From Selaginella moellendorffii (taxonomy: Eukaryota; Plantae; Lycopodiophyta): DNA of 64,000 bases. Below, in pieces: positions 43,536 to 53,329 of this stretch (position 1 is the first letter of the stretch; the number at the start of each line of letters is the position of its first letter). The position numbers and the translations under genes are program-made. The stretch is taken from NCBI RefSeq assembly GCF_000143415.4, contig NW_003314268.1:3294559-3358558 (forward strand), read 5' to 3'. Below the pieces are notes generated by a model. The model saw nothing but the letters and a program-made list of their open reading frames with translations. It ran no database searches and was not told where the DNA came from.

Positions 43536-44097
43536 ATGGCGTTGGCAGCAGGCCGTGCAGTCTTGGAGGCGCTCAGGAGCTCTCCCGGTGGCTTTGATGC
43601 GGGTGTCCTCGAGCGAGTGGAGATCAAGGCCGCCGACGCAGGCCGGATCGTCTGCGGCATTCGCGTGCCCGCCAATCTCGCCGTATGTAGTAAGATCCGT
43701 GATCCCCTCTCCGGTATAACTGTGTTTGTAGAATGGATATGGAACGCTCCACGGTGGAGCCATTGCCACGCTCATCGACTGCGTGAGCACCATGGCGGTG
43801 CTCACAGTGGGTGGCACTAACACGGGCGTCTCGATCGACCTCAGCATCACTTACGTCTCGGCCGCCAGGATCGATGTGAGTTTGGAGTCAAGAGCAAGGA
43901 TCCAAGAACACTTAAACTGGTTTCCTTTTCTCTCCCAGGATGAGCTCGAGATCGAGTCTAAAGTTTTGAAGAAGGGGAAGAACGTTGTGATGCTATCGGC
44001 CGAGGTGAGGAGAGCTGGGAAGAATGGCGAGATTGTGGCGAGTGGGCATCACACCAAGTTCTTCTCGCGGCTATCGTTGTTTACCTCCAAGCTGTGA
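43536..44097 (+). CDS. Acyl-CoA thioesterase 13-like (HotDog/PaaI fold)
   Basis: Spliced NGYGTLHGGAIATLID, GVSIDLSITYVSAA, GEIVASGHHTKF; ends SKL (PTS1). Confidence 0.9.
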
Positions 44098-44515
44098 GTT
44101 TTACCTCCCATCGATCATCTAGTAGAAATATCATCTACGATCTAGACGATCTCTGGAGCGTAAGAAAGACAAGTATGGAGAGAGAACACAAATGAAAGAA
44201 TTTGTTTCTCTGGCAATCCTGGAGTGTAAAACTCAAACACAATGCTCGAGAAAAAGTTTTTTGAGAAACACGAAGTGTTATGCTTCTACAGGAAAACAAA
44301 GATCTAACAAACAAATTAAAAAACTAGAGAGTTTGTAACATTTTGCTTTCCTCTCTTGTTGCCGAGTGTAAAGTTATGCTTTCGATTGAGATCAAAGCAA
44401 ACTGCTTAAAGCTCACAATGCGTCAAACACACTGATGCCTTGGCACCTTCCCCGCCAAACACATCACTTGGATCAAACAGGAGTGAGCACAGACACTGAC
44501 AGATCAAAGGAGCAA

Positions 44516-45184
44516 ATGGAACAACAAGACGAGCACGACGCCCACAAGAACTTCGCCTCCAGGTACCTATGCCATCCCAATCCCGCCATCGCGATCCTGA
44601 CATGGATCATCACCATTCTCCTCGTCCTCGGCTTGCTCTTCGCGTGCCTGCTGCTCGTCACTTACATCGCCTTCCACCCCAAATCGCCCAAGGTCCACAT
44701 CCGCGACATCGCCGTCCGGCACCTCGGGGCCGTCATAGCCTCGCCCACCACCTTCTTCTCCACGGCGCTCCTCAAGGCGGACCTGGGCTTGATCCTCGAC
44801 GTGGCCAATCCAAACACGCGCCTCAAGATCCTCTTCGATGACATCCACCTCAACGTCTTCTTCGACGACATCCGGGTGGGCGAGGCGGTGCTCGCGGGGT
44901 TCTCGCAGGCCAAGCGCTCAGCCCTGGCGAGCGTGGAGAAGGACGTGGAGTCGGACGGCGTGGTGCTGCCGCGGGCGGTGGCCTCCAGCTTGCTGAGGGC
45001 GCTGGCGCAGCAGAGGATCTCCTTCCGGGTGGTGATTCGAGTGAAGATCCGGTTCCAGATCGGGAAGCTCAAGACGCCCAGGCTGAAGTTTGTGGAGAGG
45101 TGCGATTTGGATGTGAGGCCCCTGGCCACCTTCACCAGGGAGAGCGTGCTTAGAAAGAACTGTGACTCTGATATCAAGTTATGA
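44516..45184 (+). CDS. NDR1/HIN1-like (LEA_2) single-pass membrane protein, intronless
   Basis: TM helix followed by FHPKSPKVHI, ANPNTRLKILFD, GFSQ and terminal C-x-L-x-V motif. Confidence 0.85.
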   Translation: MEQQDEHDAHKNFASRYLCHPNPAIAILTWIITILLVLGLLFACLLLVTYIAFHPKSPKVHIRDIAVRHLGAVIASPTTFFSTALLKADLGLILDVANPNTRLKILFDDIHLNVFFDDIRVGEAVLAGFSQAKRSALASVEKDVESDGVVLPRAVASSLLRALAQQRISFRVVIRVKIRFQIGKLKTPRLKFVERCDLDVRPLATFTRESVLRKNCDSDIKL

Positions 45185-45874
45185 TATTGAATAAATTAAC
45201 TAAAAGTATCTTGAATATTCTAGAAATATTCGTTACACCCAGGTTTTCTAAAGGTTAACATTAATAACCATTACCTGATAATAATATATACCTGTTTTAT
45301 ATTCATTTTGTCTATTTATCAAAAATATAATGGATGAGATTAAATTTTAAAACAAATATGAAAAGGAGTCTAAGTCTTTTTATAAGTATAAATTATAATC
45401 ACTGAATTCAAATAAAGATCTTAAATAAAATTTAAATTATCTATATCTATCTCATGTGTGTGTGTGTATAAAAATCAATTAGATAATTCTATTTGTAGAC
45501 ACAAGCATGGCTTCATGTAATTCTAAGTGAAATTCTTCATTATTGTCACCATTCACTTCCACCATATCTAGCTCTTGGCTAATGTCACTAGATCTGAGAG
45601 CATGTTATGGAATATTATAAACCATAAATATTTCTTAATTAAAGAAAATTAAATTCCAATTTTATTTGTCTATCAAAGACATCACCTTTCATGTTCAAAC
45701 ATTTCAAACAGTTTAATTTATTTCTTTGAAATTACAAGTATTAAAAGGCATGGATAAAAGTCAGAAATTTCTTCCACTGACTTCTTTGTAATCTTTCCTT
45801 TTTTGTTTGCCATTAAAAATCAGTACATCAATTTGAGTATATACTTTTTATTAATGCTATTAGGTTCTATGTTT

Positions 45875-46460
45875 TTAAGTTTTGTTTATTGCATCCAGGA
45901 AAGCTTTGTGGGCAATAGCCACAGCATTCTTCCATCGTTGGTGAGAAGAGCAATTTTTCAACCGAGCTATGCTTCTACGGGTCATATTTTCGATCTGGGG
46001 AGAGAACGCAGTGGCCTCCACTCCATATAAGAGATAGTCCAGGGATGAGGAAGATCCGGGTGCTGCAGCTGATGTAGCAGTTGTGGACTCATCATGATCC
46101 GGCCACCATATGTACACATGAACTTTACCCTTCGTCCTAGGATTTGAAGAACATCTGGTTGGTTTGATCACGGCACTAAGCACTGGGAATTTCTAAAGCT
46201 AGCATCCATTCTTTTTGAAGCAAGAACTTTCAGGATAGATGAAAACTTGGGCGCGACCACCCCTCGACCAGTCGATTGATCTTTTCCAGGAGCTAGCTCC
46301 AAAAGGAACCTTCTTCTTTTCTTCTTGAGTTTATCTGCTTGGATTGTTAGAGAACAAGGCAAGAAAATGTACAAACCTGCTGGAATGCTCTCTGGATGTC
46401 GAAGAACTTGACCTTAAGAGACTTCTCAATGTAACAAGGCGCTCATAGAACATGGACAGG
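45875..46460 (-). pseudogene. Possible gene relic of unknown family
   Basis: Open stretches (DKLKKKRRRFLLELAPG; KGKVHVYIWWPDHD...LDYLLYGVE) linked by a GT-AG intron, with stops and a frameshift; no recognisable domain. Confidence 0.3.
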
Positions 46461-47995
46461 TGCTATTTATGATGATTTTATATGATGCACATTTTGATCT
46501 GTGATAATTGCTTTTCCACCATACATTTCCACAAAAAGATCATGAGCACCCGGCCACACCTGTAAGCTTTGGCACACTCTGATGGTGAAAGGATATATAA
46601 ACTTGTGCAAGGATGTACAAACTTGTACTGAAAAAGCACATACATAAACAAAATCTACATTTCAACACAAAAGTTCTAGTGACTCTTTAAATTTTCGAGT
46701 TTGATTTCAGACAAAACCATATGCTTAATTAGAGATTTTAACATAAAAAAAAACACAATAAAGAATTTGCCGTTTTGATGCCCATCAAATCTGACGTGTA
46801 TGTGCATTGCCCCAGTCGCGACGAGAGGACCGATCGAAGCGGATGATTCTGAGCTACGCGACGAGCGATTTCAAGCCTCAATTTGCTTGTTCTTTTTCTT
46901 GGTTTTGTTGGACGGGCAGGCAGGCAGGATCGATTGCTGGAAGTTCGTCTCTTTTCTCTGGGTGCATAAGCAATTCAAAATTTAGCGGGAAATGAGAAAT
47001 GCAAAATGCAGAGGTAAAATCCTAAAGCGAACCAAAATTCATAAAGCGTTTGCTGCTATATTTTTACACGCGCTTGGTGGTCGAGCCAGCAGAGTCAAAG
47101 AGAGCTTCAACACAAGTTTGTGGTGGTTTTTCTGGCTGGAACTGATTTCCAGACCTGTCACACTTGTGGAGGAGGAGATTCCAGTGGCCAGGTGCTGTGC
47201 GTTTTCGAGTGAAGAGAAGTCGGCTCTTTTAAACCAGCTGCAATAAGATGAAGGTACTTCATGCTTTTGGTTTGCAAGATTTGTAATCAAACTCGAGAAC
47301 CAAGCGGGTTAGCTATAATCTTAAGAGGAAGGAAAAGCATGGGCATGAGCTTCCTGGCGGATCAAGTTCATCCACTGAACTATGCTTGCATGCTCATGGT
47401 CACCGTATGGCTCAGTTGTTCACGGATTGATCGATTCGCCATGCTGGATCAAGAGGCAGAGATCACAAAATTCCAGTGGCGCTGGTGGCAGTGGAAATTG
47501 CGCAAGTATGCTGACTCGAACATCCTCTCCGCCTATTCCACGCCGGTCCCGACGAGAAACTTCCCCAAGAACGCTCGCGGGGCGACAGCAATCGCGGTGG
47601 GGATGCATGGCCACTGCCAGCATCCTAATGGTGGTATATGAAAGACACTTTGAACTAAATATTTTCTTAGCTCCAGAACAGCTAACTATCGTTTCTTATT
47701 GCATCTTTTTAAAATTGATCATAGCAAAGCAGCATCTTTGTGGTCACTGATTCACTCACGACCGAAACCAAAGCGCGCGAGTCATGTTTCCAAGGATGGA
47801 TTGACGGGTTTCGATTCTGCCGCATAGGCCGTCTGAATTAAATTGTGTTAATTAATGGATTGGTTCGGTGCGATATTTTCTTGCTCAGGTGGTGCGGCCG
47901 TTCATTTTCTTAGCCGAGCTCGAGCAACCATCGAGCTAGCAATCGATTCCCACCCTATTATGTATGATATTTCATTACTCTCTTGATCATCACCT

Positions 47996-48592
47996 ATGGC
48001 AAGCTCGGGTAACCACCATTTTTCTCTGCTAGTTTCTCACCAAGTGCCAGTTTCTCACAGTGCTGTTTTCCAGGAACGCTTCCGATAACAGGCCAGTTTG
48101 AAGACGATGATCTCCAAGAGTTCCTGATGAAGCTAGACGAAGACAAAAGTGCCAGCGAGAAAGGCACGAGGGGCAACCTGCCCAAAGAGCATGATCTCCA
48201 AGAGTTCGTGATGGAGCTAGACGAAGACAACAGTGCTGGCGAGGAGATTCCTTGCCAGGAATCCCCGGCAACAACTCTAAAACGCAGACGAGAGCTCTCG
48301 GGAACGAGGGGAAATCTGCCCAAACAGGCAGTTGAAGTTATGCTTTCATGGCTCTATGCAAATCGGCAGAACCCGTAAGCTCTATCAATCTCTGGGCTTG
48401 CAAGGATCTAAGCTTGAATGCCTGCAGGTATCCAAGCAAAGAACAAAAACAGAAGTTTGCACAAGACTTGGGCATCACGAAGAAACAGGTAAGATTATTG
48501 ATGTTTCTTTCTTGTTTATAATTTTCGTGATGTTTCAGGTTGAAAATTTCTTCAGCAATAGCCGAGCTAGAGTGCTCAAGAGAAACAAATAA
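47996..48592 (+). CDS. Small TALE (BELL-derived) homeodomain protein, 142 aa
   Basis: Exons 47996-48008, 48074-48374, 48428-48488 and 48539-48592 splice in frame: ...RGNLPKQAVEVMLSWLYANRQNPYPSKEQKQKFAQDLGITKKQVENFFSNSRARVLKRNK*. PYP loop present. Confidence 0.85.
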
Positions 48593-50860
48593 GAAATGAA
48601 ACATGCTTGTGCCACTGAGCCTGAAGTTTCTCTGCCGTTGGTTTTAACGGTTGCGTGTCGGATGCCGCTGATGCCTGCGTCAGGATTGGTGTTTCTCGCT
48701 TGAAAAGCCTCTAATCGCCGAGAGGACGACGCATCCAGAGCAATCGAACCGATTTTTCGTGATTTCGAGCCTCATTTTGCTTGGTTTTTTCTTGGCTTTC
48801 TTGGACGGGGCTCTCTTTCTTATACATGTAATCATAATCACATAAACTATTAAAAGTTGTTTACTTGAGCTTTCAAATTTCTACTTTACTATTTCCCTTT
48901 TTTTCCCAATGGAACTTGGAGTTTGTACTTCATTCCATTTTTGTAAGATTTACGCTTCCAAGATAACAATATCTCAGACTCTTCAAACATACTAAATTAT
49001 GGATTTAATGACAGGACAATGCTAACCCCATTTTACATGCCCATGCCCACCAGCCCACACTTCACTTTTTGATGGCACAAAAATTTATGCCTTCTGAATA
49101 CATAGAAAGTGATAGCAGAAGCACATTTGAAGCAATTCCAAGCTCATAACATAGAAAAAACTCATGGGATATTCATGCCAAGTCATTATTTCTTTCATCT
49201 GATGTAGTTTTTATGGCAATTTGATCATTAATGATTATAATTTTGTGTTGGAAAAAAGAAAGAAAAATTTAAAATTGAAGTTTACAACACAAAAAATTAT
49301 AAATTTAGGAAAACATACATATATTAATAAAACTTTGCTGCTTGTAATGCTTTAGAAAATATTTGATTAATAATATATTTTAGGCTTAATAATTTTGTGC
49401 TTTTTTAATAAATTTATTATTTGTTATTTGTTATATTTTCAGCAGAAATTTTTTTCAAAATTTTAAAACATACAATTATATAGTTAAATGATTAGAGTAC
49501 AAAATTATTAAAAATAAGAAATTTAAAACATACTTATTCGGCATTGGATGTCAATTAACTTTTCAACAGTAAGCTTTTTTGTACTTTTTATGAGGCTCAC
49601 TAAGTTGGATGTAATGGTATGTACAAAGATCATGATGCCTCACATATATAGCATTTTCATTGTGGAGCATACTTTCAACTTTATTGCATTTTGACAGTGC
49701 AAAGCTTTATGGTAGACCTGTTGGAGAGCTTGGGTTTAACTTGGTGTAAATCTTGAAGTTCAAAGGCTACTATGAAGGGGACATCAAGTTTCATACTCAC
49801 AGGATTAGCTCTAGTTTACCAAATACAATGCTTCCAACCTCAATCATTTAAGTATTGCATGATTAGTAAGAGTATTGCATGATATTCTTACTAATCAGTT
49901 ATCACTCAAAAAATCAAATAGTAATGTTTATGGCTGGCTTATTTCCTAGGTAAGTTTTGAATTGCCCCATAAGGCAATGTGAGGGACACCTACAGCCAGG
50001 TGTATGTTCATGAAATTTACTTTTTGGTTTGTTTTAAAAAACCTAGCAAGGAGATGTAATGCAAGTGTATTTTAGAATATTCTTTAATCCAATAGTTAAT
50101 TTTTCTCAAATTATTTTGTAAGCGCTACTTAGAACTAATATAAACCCTATTTACTTTAAAGCTCCATCATCTATTTCTATATACCTTTATCTTCAGAGCA
50201 TGATATATGGTTTCCTAAAGATGGTTCTGGTGTAAGCTCTTGGATTGAGCAAACTCACTGTGTGATTGAATGACATGAAGAAATGAAGTGTGTTGGTTTT
50301 GCTACCAAGTCAAAGATCAAACACTAGGAGGCACCGCCCAAACTGCATGGTGATGGTACTTTGCAACACTATGGTTTATGCAAAACAACTACCTCAATTA
50401 AATAAAGATTAATTGAGCCAAGGATCTGCATACCTAGAATGGAACTCCAGGACAATTTAAATTGGAAGGCTTTTAAAACATGGTTGCAGGTGACATGGTT
50501 TCACTTGTAGTAACATCAGTTAGCTGTGTTAAAGAGGAACTGATATAGACTATGTTGTTTTTGTTGGATATTGTGATCTGGACCTGCTCAATGCTTCACC
50601 CCTAAAAATCTTACACACATTAGGAAGTGTATTATGTTGCAAACCTTTATGAGACTCTAGAGACATAGTATCCTAAATAAAACAAATTAAGCATTGCTGC
50701 CAAGCATAACAAATTAAATGTTCATGTAATAAATTTATGAGCTACTGAATTATGACTTGCTAAGGAAGAGAAAGGTTTTCAAGAGTCATCACAACTAGCC
50801 ACTATATTAGCAGCTATAATGTGATTAGTCATATTTCTGGATAATCCCATTGCTGAAGAA

Positions 50861-51657
50861 TCACAAGAAAGCTCCAGACGTGGATGGAAATCTGGTGTCA
50901 TGGGCTTTCAACTCGGCGTGGAGGGGATCGACACAGATACCATAGTCAACTAGAGGATTGTTCTCGAGCTCCCCATCGTGTTCTTCCACAAACTCCGGAA
51001 CTTCAAGCTGGTCGTCTTTTATGTAGTCCCTCAGGAACTCAACTCTACTTACGTAGTGTAATTTCCAGTAGAGCCTGCCAAGAACAATGGAAAACACAAA
51101 AGAAATATTAGCACAGGAGTTTATTTACGTACCCGTCGCTCAAGAAGATCCTGCCGAGTGTGGCGAGGATGAGACGCGATCGAATGCCCGGGTGGACGAA
51201 GTAGACAATCTCGAGCTTCTGCCTCACGGCGGCCGGGAGCGCGGCATGGATTTGGTGCAGCGCTTTCACACCGGGGGAATTCTCGCCGCTCTGCACGCAG
51301 GTGTGGAAGTAGACGATGACGAAGCTCTCGAGCTCAAAACGCGCAAGCTTGAGCACCACGAAGCGCTGCAATCGCTGCGCGTCGATTATCGCCGCTGCAA
51401 AGGAGAGAGGAGATAAATGCCAGGGTTCGATCGGGTAGGGTGAGCTCACCGTGAAGGAATTTGCCCACGACTCGCACGATTCTCCTGCCCTGCTTGTCGC
51501 GGCCCTGGACGCGAATTAGCTGGAGCGCTTCCAGGTCATCGAATGCGCCGCTCGCATCTGATTCCACGGCTTGAATCTCGCCCCCATCTTCCTCTTGCTC
51601 TCGGATCTCTTGCTCATCGGTTAGCACGACCACATCACCAGCTAAACCCCACCCCAT
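50861..51657 (-). CDS. CRAL-TRIO_2 / BCH-domain (GDAP2-like) protein
   Basis: QGRDKQGRRIVRVVGKF, FVIVYFHTCVQ, VYFVHPGIRSRL, LYWKLHYVSRVEFL, PEFVEEHD; two introns. Confidence 0.9.
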
Positions 51658-52720: not shown

Positions 52721-53329
52721 TCCTCCTCAAATTCTTTCTCAGTATCTGTTATTGGGCTGTTAAGTAATGGTTATTTACTCCTTTTTTCAGACTTGTGGCT
52801 TCTTTGCTCCACTTGATATCGAGCTTCTCTTTCTTTACTTTATTGTTCATGTTTTCATTCATATTCTTTAAGATATAAATGAATTTTATTTTATATCTTT
52901 TGGATATACACTATTAGAAGGAGACAATCCTGGATTTAGTGGGTAGCCTAGTCTATCTAATGCTATCACTTAAATCTCCTCACATGCTCTCCTTTCTTAG
53001 GCAGTGCACTAAAAGATGCTAAGGCTAACATGACAACACTCAAGCTGAGTGTACTTGGAGACTAGGTCATGGATGCCTTGACTACTTGCCATAGTCCTCT
53101 TCTTTCTCCATAAATCCTTCATTATTCCCCCCCAAGGTTATAAATGATATCTCCTTCCTCTCCTATATAATTGTGTCCTCTCCTAGAAGAGTCATCATCT
53201 TTCACTATAATCCACTCTACCACTTAAGACTTGGTCTTGGCTACCAACTGAATATAAACACTTGATAATTTAATATGCACACTTATTATAGTTTTTGCAC
53301 AAGATGGAACTTCGACCTTAATAAAAAGA

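Follow-up and report, generated by a model that had tools for sequence, protein, structure and literature searches.

KNOX-BELL heterodimers control the haploid-to-diploid developmental switch across green plants. Canonical BELL proteins have a homeodomain with the N-terminal arm QRGLPE and the helix 3 WFINARVR, together with POX/SKY/BELL domains and C-terminal motifs (ZIBEL / VSLTLGL; PMC2775110, PMC3904721), and in their genes an exon 3 of 61 nt is bounded by two introns, one of phase 2 that splits the first proline codon of the PYP loop and one of phase 0 that separates Q44 from V45. In the BEL genes of potato, tomato, rice, and Arabidopsis, exon 2 ends with the CC of that proline codon (CC/N, the slash marking the intron) and exon 3 has this length (Sharma et al., 2014; PMC3904721). 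Joo et al. (2018; PMC6219170) described the 24(2/3) intron as BELL-specific and the 44/45 intron as ancient and widely shared, the KNOX intron lying at 48(2/3) rather than at 44/45. TALE genes without a partner domain are also known from land plants. Marchantia keeps algal-type BELL-related genes in which no partner domain is discernible; these genes, MpBELL2-5, fall outside the canonical BELL clade, some of them encode hardly more than homeodomains and have undergone duplication within the gene, and they are expressed in sexual organs only (Dierschke et al., bioRxiv 10.1101/2020.04.06.027821). In Selaginella moellendorffii, an exhaustive search of the genome yielded five (text) or six (table) additional TALE genes that could be grouped confidently with neither KNOX nor BEL and lacked a recognizable KNOX/BEL codomain (Mukherjee, Brocchieri and Burglin, 2009; PMC2775110).

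The gene studied here is a small TALE homeobox gene in a 64,000-nt stretch of S. moellendorffii DNA (the window; coordinates are collected in Table 1). The stretch belongs to scaffold GL377572.1, with which it is 100% identical over 13,254 nt (all bases compared). The gene is real and is annotated on both haplotypes, hence known rather than new. GenBank annotates the locus on GL377572.1 as SELMODRAFT_407891 (P0153, 236 aa), of which residues 99-236 correspond to exons 2-4 of the gene, and a search with the exon 2 translation found the allele SELMODRAFT_417865 (P0001, 141 aa, 93% identical), which has the same four-exon layout on scaffold GL377601.1. The latter scaffold is the syntenic second haplotype, with 96.1% identity over 2.9 kb at the TALE gene and matching sequence on both flanks. 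When P0001 was searched against the window by tblastn, exons 2, 3, and 4 were recovered; these are common to the two models, which differ only in the first exon (236 vs 141 aa). Both records are hypothetical proteins in GenBank and a "Homeobox domain-containing protein" in UniProt, carrying no class name and no comment on introns, duplication, or paralogue, and a literature text search found no mention of either locus tag. Being an S. moellendorffii TALE homeodomain without a KNOX/BEL codomain, the gene resembles the "uncharacterized" genes of Mukherjee et al. (2009; PMC2775110) and is likely one of those five or six.

Table 1. Features of the TALE locus and its neighbourhood (positions in the window)
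Feature	Position	Strand	Remarks
Callose synthase gene	up to about 42280	+	annotated; FKS1, CALS1, and Glucan_synthase domains
4HBT thioesterase-fold gene	43617-44067	+	annotated
Upstream neighbour	44435-47246	+	separate annotated 315-aa gene
Block duplicated on GL377594.1	47009-48809	+	blastn vs L004, 68-87% identity
Alternative first exon of the 236-aa model SELMODRAFT_407891	47339-47633	+	spliced to acceptor 48073/48074; probably not coding
TALE gene	47996-48592	+	four exons, 142-residue product, three GT-AG introns, read from the sequence
Exon 1, predicted first coding exon	47996-48008	+	ATG plus 10 nt, phase 1; first exon of the P0001 model
Intron 1	48009-48073	+	65 nt, GT-AG
Exon 2	48074-48374	+	acidic N-terminal region, homeodomain N-terminal arm, helix 1; ends AAC CC/gtaag
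In-frame tandem duplication within exon 2	48109-48324	+	copy A 48109-48186, copy B 48193-48324
TALE homeodomain coding region	48301-48589	+	Pfam Homeobox_KN; split by introns 2 and 3
Intron 2	48375-48427	+	53 nt, GT-AG, ends ctgcag
Exon 3	48428-48488	+	61 nt; rest of PYP loop and helix 2, to Q44; G TAT CCA ... AAA CAG/gtaaga
Intron 3	48489-48538	+	50 nt, GT-AG, between Q44 and V45
Exon 4	48539-48592	+	helix 3 (FFSNSRAR) and stop; GTT GAA AAT TTC TTC AGC AAT ... TAA
CRAL_TRIO_2 gene	50861-51657	-	annotated

The initial annotation, made from the sequence alone, had read four exons encoding a 142-aa protein with an acidic N-terminus and a C-terminal TALE homeodomain; we confirmed this base by base, and the annotation of the allele gives the same model. 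The acceptor of exon 2 (48073/48074) is used by both annotated models, and tblastn of P0001 matches 48073-48375 at 93%. In exon 4 there are no differences between the haplotypes, and its stop codon (48590-48592) directly adjoins the end of the homeodomain. Closer inspection of the acidic N-terminus identified it as an in-frame tandem duplication that repeats an acidic motif together with the GTRGNLPK arm of the homeodomain. The two copies are identical at 44 of 49 bases at their start (local alignment), and copy B contains 54 nt without a counterpart in copy A. This duplication and a paralogous pseudogene block on GL377594.1, described below, are new details of the locus.

The initial annotation had also placed introns within the PYP loop and before helix 3, around a 61-nt exon, and had taken them to be at the positions of plant BELL genes. 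Both parts proved right. Exon 2 ends with the CC of the first PYP proline codon and exon 3 supplies its G (CC/G), and the next intron separates Q44 from V45, in agreement with PMC3904721 and PMC6219170. As a control we used a Rumex BELL gene (P0081, locus L003), whose POX domains were found by Pfam. Its exon 2 ends with CAT CC/gt (a CC/T split), its exon 3 is exactly 61 nt long (L003 2246-2306) and ends with CAG/gt, and its exon 4 starts from V45 (CAG/GTA). The introns of the Selaginella gene coincide with these in position and phase (CC/G, 61 nt, CAG/GTT), and the intron of the KNOX class is lacking at codon 48, the gene having its intron at 44/45. This well-supported BELL-type skeleton ties at least this Selaginella orphan to the BELL lineage. 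Because the homeodomain is only 33% identical to that of a canonical BELL, it is the introns that argue for such an ancestry.

Canonical BELL genes encode POX/SKY/BELL domains and C-terminal motifs, whereas the Selaginella gene has neither. No POX domain (PF07526) was found in P0001, P0153, exon 2, or any ORF of 44 aa or more on the + strand of 45185-48075. Likewise, Pfam found no KNOX1/2 (MEINOX), ELK, SKY, or BELL domain in either protein or in these upstream ORFs, and the C-terminal motifs are absent, the stop codon following right after the homeodomain. The absence of these domains, which the initial annotation had reported, thus stood in the protein and the ORFs searched, and no upstream exon supplying a POX domain, which would have spoken against its proposal, was found among them. 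It is nevertheless conceivable that the TALE gene is the mere 3' end of a longer gene whose upstream exons add either a POX domain or the N-terminal extension of the 236-aa model. The GenBank product does use the exon at 47339-47633, and the block duplicated with the paralogue starts at 47009, upstream of the short model. However, in the other haplotype this exon is broken by loss of the ATG (to ATT), a 2-nt insertion that shifts the frame, a 12-nt deletion, and a TGG to TGA change that creates a stop codon, and it has no Pfam domain and no RNA reads; moreover, the upstream + strand ORFs match neither POX nor KNOX, and the next upstream gene, on the same strand, ends within 3 kb. We consider a longer gene very unlikely. 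We rejected the first exon of the 236-aa model as conserved coding sequence, since it is disrupted in the allele and lacks a Pfam domain, and the annotated 236-residue model is probably wrong. The 13-nt exon 1 of the short model does not differ between the haplotypes and found no transcript support in three RNA-seq runs. If intron 1 is left unspliced, an in-frame ATG at 48127 would serve as the start codon, for a product of ~120 residues with the same homeodomain.

Some features of the surroundings were recorded in passing. The model of the 315-aa upstream neighbour joins a long ORF (44435-45184) to small exons reaching 47246, and RNA reads cover 44400-45187 only, leaving its 3' exons without support in these runs. 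Just downstream of the TALE gene, an AT-rich region of about 1.3 kb (48821-50147) has a counterpart of a mere 300 nt or so on the second haplotype (L001 6825-7134), an insertion or deletion specific to one haplotype in which we found no clear terminal repeats. Two short pieces, 50148-50324 (177 nt) and 52998-53218 (221 nt), align to the other haplotype in reverse, beside directly matching sequence, and represent small inversions or inverted duplications between the haplotypes.

We next describe the homeodomain itself. Single exons were used for searches, and P0153 (residues 99-236) and P0001 stood for the whole protein. Pfam assigns residues 99-236 of P0153 to Homeobox_KN with 56 bits (E 3.4e-15, cut-off 24), well beyond chance, and P0001 with 46.8 bits. 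Exon 3 alone is still recognized (E 3e-4), and exon 2 alone gives no Pfam match, helix 1 by itself being too short. In an alignment with 34 other TALE homeodomains (A2, 35 sequences), the protein shows no gap at the three-residue loop extension (P-Y-P region), and P5, W16, N51, R53, and R55 are invariant, this protein included. Where canonical BELL proteins have the arm QRGLPE and WFINARVR in helix 3, the Selaginella protein has RGNLPK and FFSNSRAR. Within this helix F49, N51, R53, and R55 are kept and positions 48, 50, and 54 are altered, so that the W48F and I50S changes noted from the sequence are real; F48 is shared with only one other of the 35 sequences, W48 being otherwise almost invariant, and positions 50 and 54 carry Ser instead of Ile and Ala, respectively. 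The AlphaFold2 model contains three helices (residues 84-96, 105-115, and 119-137) with pLDDT 94-98, while the N-terminal region is modeled with low confidence and shows one helix over the first acidic motif. Among solved structures, the closest by sequence are MEIS1/2, TGIF1, PKNOX1, Exd, and PBX1 (E about 1e-12), and Foldseek superimposed the model on MEIS1, Exd, TGIF1, and PBX1 with TM 0.8-0.9 and rmsd of about 1 A. Of the proteins with solved structures, the animal TGIF, MEIS, and PBX homeodomains thus come closest both in sequence and in fold, at 42-49% identity. The arm is of the TGIF type, RGNLPK, which bears out the resemblance that had been noticed from the sequence. In contrast, TGIF and MEIS have W48, I50, and R54 where the Selaginella protein has F48, S50, and A54, and the likeness lies in the generic TALE core.

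Among 1.84 billion cluster representatives searched with HMMER, only the gene itself scored below 1e-30, and none outside S. moellendorffii showed more than about 50% identity, which agrees with the lineage-specific character proposed in the initial annotation. Cluster and protein searches found no orthologue in other plants. In a per-domain ranking the best matches were TGIF-like, MEIS-like, fungal, and protist TALE proteins with about 42-49% identity, proteins with several homeodomains ranking high only through summed scores; the clusters of 20 of the best matches were mostly unnamed and included none from Selaginella, and the ESM Atlas returned only generic Homeobox_KN clusters with scores below 0.9. 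Over the homeodomain, the protein is identical to the canonical Rumex BELL at 20 of 61 positions (33%), to a KNOX-like protein at 24, to a TALE protein of the charophyte Mesotaenium, which shares R53-A54-R55, at 26, and to a TGIF-like protein at 27. Identity to the Rumex BELL is accordingly lower than that to KNOX-like, PBC, TGIF-like, or charophyte TALE proteins.

An IQ-TREE analysis of 65 columns with long branches left most forks open. In it the gene stands apart from the TGIF-like group, is not grouped with BELL, and lies beside the Mesotaenium TALE with 92/75 support, below the usual threshold. Kinship with TGIF was rejected: although the arm and the ranking of matches are TGIF-like, in the tree the gene falls on the opposite side, and what the two have in common is the shared TALE core. 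As a side observation, the Mesotaenium endlicherianum protein (P0132, 251 aa) is built in a similar way, with an internally repeated acidic N-terminal region and its homeodomain at the extreme C-terminus, besides R53-A54-R55. The description of the gene as BELL-derived draws on its intron positions; its homeodomain has 20/61 identities to canonical BELL and a charophyte TALE as the nearest neighbour in a poorly resolved tree. These observations bear on the possibility that the gene stems not from the canonical land-plant BELL clade but from a more ancient TALE lineage of algal type, related to BELL/GLX and lacking POX, as is seen in MpBELL2-5 of Marchantia. The higher identity to the Mesotaenium protein than to canonical BELL and the joining of the two in the tree point in this direction, as do the presence of the 24(2/3) intron in a Klebsormidium GLX homologue (PMC6219170) and the survival of such genes in Marchantia (bioRxiv 10.1101/2020.04.06.027821). 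Against it stand the sub-threshold support from a short alignment with long branches, a sampling in which canonical BELL had one member and GLX and GSP1 none, and the lack of an orthologue in any other plant searched. We regard such an origin as quite improbable. The homeodomain sequence thus did not assign the gene to a class, in line with the result of Mukherjee et al. (2009; PMC2775110).

The block around the gene is duplicated on GL377594.1, and the copy there is a pseudogene with at least six disruptions. In alignment A3, the start codon is changed from ATG to AGG, the exon 1 donor has lost 2 nt, a 12-nt deletion is present, a 29-nt deletion takes away the arm and the first part of helix 1, the acceptor of intron 2 is changed from AG to AA, 1 nt is inserted in exon 3, and a 23-nt deletion removes the acceptor of intron 3 and the start of exon 4. 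At the site of the tandem duplication the paralogue has a single copy and 75 nt fewer. Its FFSNSRAR helix 3 codons and the stop codon are retained, and therefore the altered helix and the truncated C-terminus predate the duplication of the block. The annotated gene SELMODRAFT_416114 (P0160, 156 aa, no Pfam domain; L004 6001-7677) is a model stitched across this decayed paralogue; it reads the exon 3 homologue partly out of frame, and the annotation looks spurious.

The fate of the sister copy raises the question of whether the gene in the window is itself a silent relic, a truncated BELL-lineage duplicate, neither expressed nor selected, in which a disabling mutation is merely still to come, the paralogue having already been hit. 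We hold this to be a serious possibility, somewhat short of probable. A plain pseudogene as a sister fits it, and so does the divergence between the two copies, in which exons (11.0%) differ as fast as introns (10.5%) and dN/dS is 1.05. On the other hand, the gene here has escaped disruption, and a paralogue of the same age carries at least six such changes. On either haplotype the gene retains its reading frame, start codon, and six splice sites, and the two indels in its coding sequence (the tandem duplication and one of 3 nt) preserve the frame. If both copies had drifted equally, all six disruptions would fall on one copy with a chance of about 1 in 32.

Comparison of the alleles gave a similar picture of weak constraint. 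Between the haplotypes, substitutions amount to 13/426 (3.0%) in exons, 4/168 (2.4%) in introns, and 6/305 (2.0%) in flanks. By the NG86 method, applied exon by exon to whole codons and leaving out the three that introns split, dN/dS is 0.61, from 3 synonymous and 7 non-synonymous changes. This value is indistinguishable from 1, as expected of a relic; omega of 0.1 or less was rejected between the alleles (P 0.006) and omega from 0.2 to 1 was not, so that values of 0.2-0.5, which would speak against a relic, are also allowed. Some of the exon 2 differences carry what is found at the matching site of the other repeat, suggesting conversion and hence fewer independent events. Two conserved homeodomain positions differ between the alleles (N or Y immediately ahead of the loop, and Y or F within PYP), and this variation too favors a relic. 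The presence of F48 in place of the almost invariant W48 is a further point against a working gene. Over a longer time span, the homeodomain has diverged far from every other TALE (at most 49% identity) and yet is recognized with 56 bits, which argues for long past constraint.

Expression was examined in three RNA-seq runs of one study, from tissue of unknown kind, of which about 12% each was read against 44400-50300. Each run gave 12-23 reads, nearly all of them on the neighbour gene at 44400-45187, and there were none over 47355-50300. In addition, none of the sampled words was present in 17 further probable RNA contig sets of S. moellendorffii, and we found no transcript-derived proteins clustering with P0001 or P0153. 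The lack of RNA reads and transcript contigs again speaks for a relic, against which the small extent of the RNA sample has to be weighed. The initial annotation had held that missing spliced transcripts, or a dN/dS near 1 with disrupted orthologues, would refute its proposal. Each of these was found in part: the three runs and 17 contig sets contained no spliced transcript, and a disrupted paralogue exists beside an allelic dN/dS for which omega 1 was not rejected.

Two sets of sequences that matched the region were rejected as evidence of expression. In run X1 (about 3 Mb of contigs), two contigs are colinear with the genome, at 45958-46700 and 48259-49129, the latter spanning introns 2 and 3 of the TALE gene. 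Since they run through introns and the library type is unknown, they were discounted; they could be enrichment-assay DNA or unspliced RNA. Reads of X4-X6 (8 in X6) match a 48-nt piece, 47155-47202, and this piece only; they run into unrelated sequence at either end, differ from the window at two fixed positions (47179 T>C and 47189 C>G), and were not accepted as transcripts of the locus. The unmatched end sequences are absent from the window, L001, L002, L003, and L004, so that an expressed paralogous copy of this upstream element must lie elsewhere in the genome.

Taking the structural and comparative results together, we favor a working, lineage-specific TALE gene with narrow expression, a BELL skeleton, and no partner domain, and give this reading about an even chance of being correct. 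The gene retains the BELL-lineage skeleton of the 24(2/3) intron, the 44/45 intron, and the 61-nt exon 3, and on this reading all that once lay before (POX/SKY/BELL) or after the homeodomain has gone. Its product of about 120-142 residues is predicted to consist of a duplicated acidic, partly helical N-terminal segment and a well-formed TALE homeodomain. The protein may bind DNA alone or with an unknown partner rather than through the canonical KNOX-BELL (MEINOX-POX) contact, and S50 and A54 may shift its base preference. Its production would be limited to a brief stage outside the RNA samples, such as in reproductive or gametophytic tissue. Whereas the anatomy, domain content, intron homology, lack of relatives elsewhere, and contrast with the decayed paralogue were observed, expression, DNA binding, and any regulatory role are inferred.

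A role as a microprotein, as a competitor, or as a regulator with new DNA specificity, as the initial annotation suggested, can be envisaged from the sequence. The size and single domain of the protein fit the microprotein class. Microproteins of the KNATM type keep the MEINOX interaction domain, lack a homeodomain, and titrate partners (see PMC4617109). The Selaginella protein is likewise a small single-domain TALE derivative but presents the reverse case, with a homeodomain only, and may at most be a competitor for DNA. The Marchantia genes MpBELL2-5 offer another comparison, drawn by description only, as land-plant TALE genes free of a partner domain; what distinguishes the Selaginella gene is that it contains a single homeodomain, with the arm alone partially duplicated. 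A bolder proposal is that a vascular plant still possesses a working POX-less algal-type BELL-related TALE gene of the MpBELL2-5 kind, which would be expressed only in gametes or the zygote, read DNA by its Ser50/Ala54 helix without KNOX-BELL contact, and evolve fast like other reproductive genes. We think this unlikely.

By itself the gene adds little that is new, being annotated and of a kind described in 2009 (PMC2775110). For studies of the Selaginella orphan TALE genes, it contributes the BELL-type introns, the doubtful 236-residue model, and a pseudogene sister that dates the FFSNSRAR helix to before the duplication. TALE genes free of partner domains are of interest for the diversification of the KNOX-BELL haploid-diploid switch.
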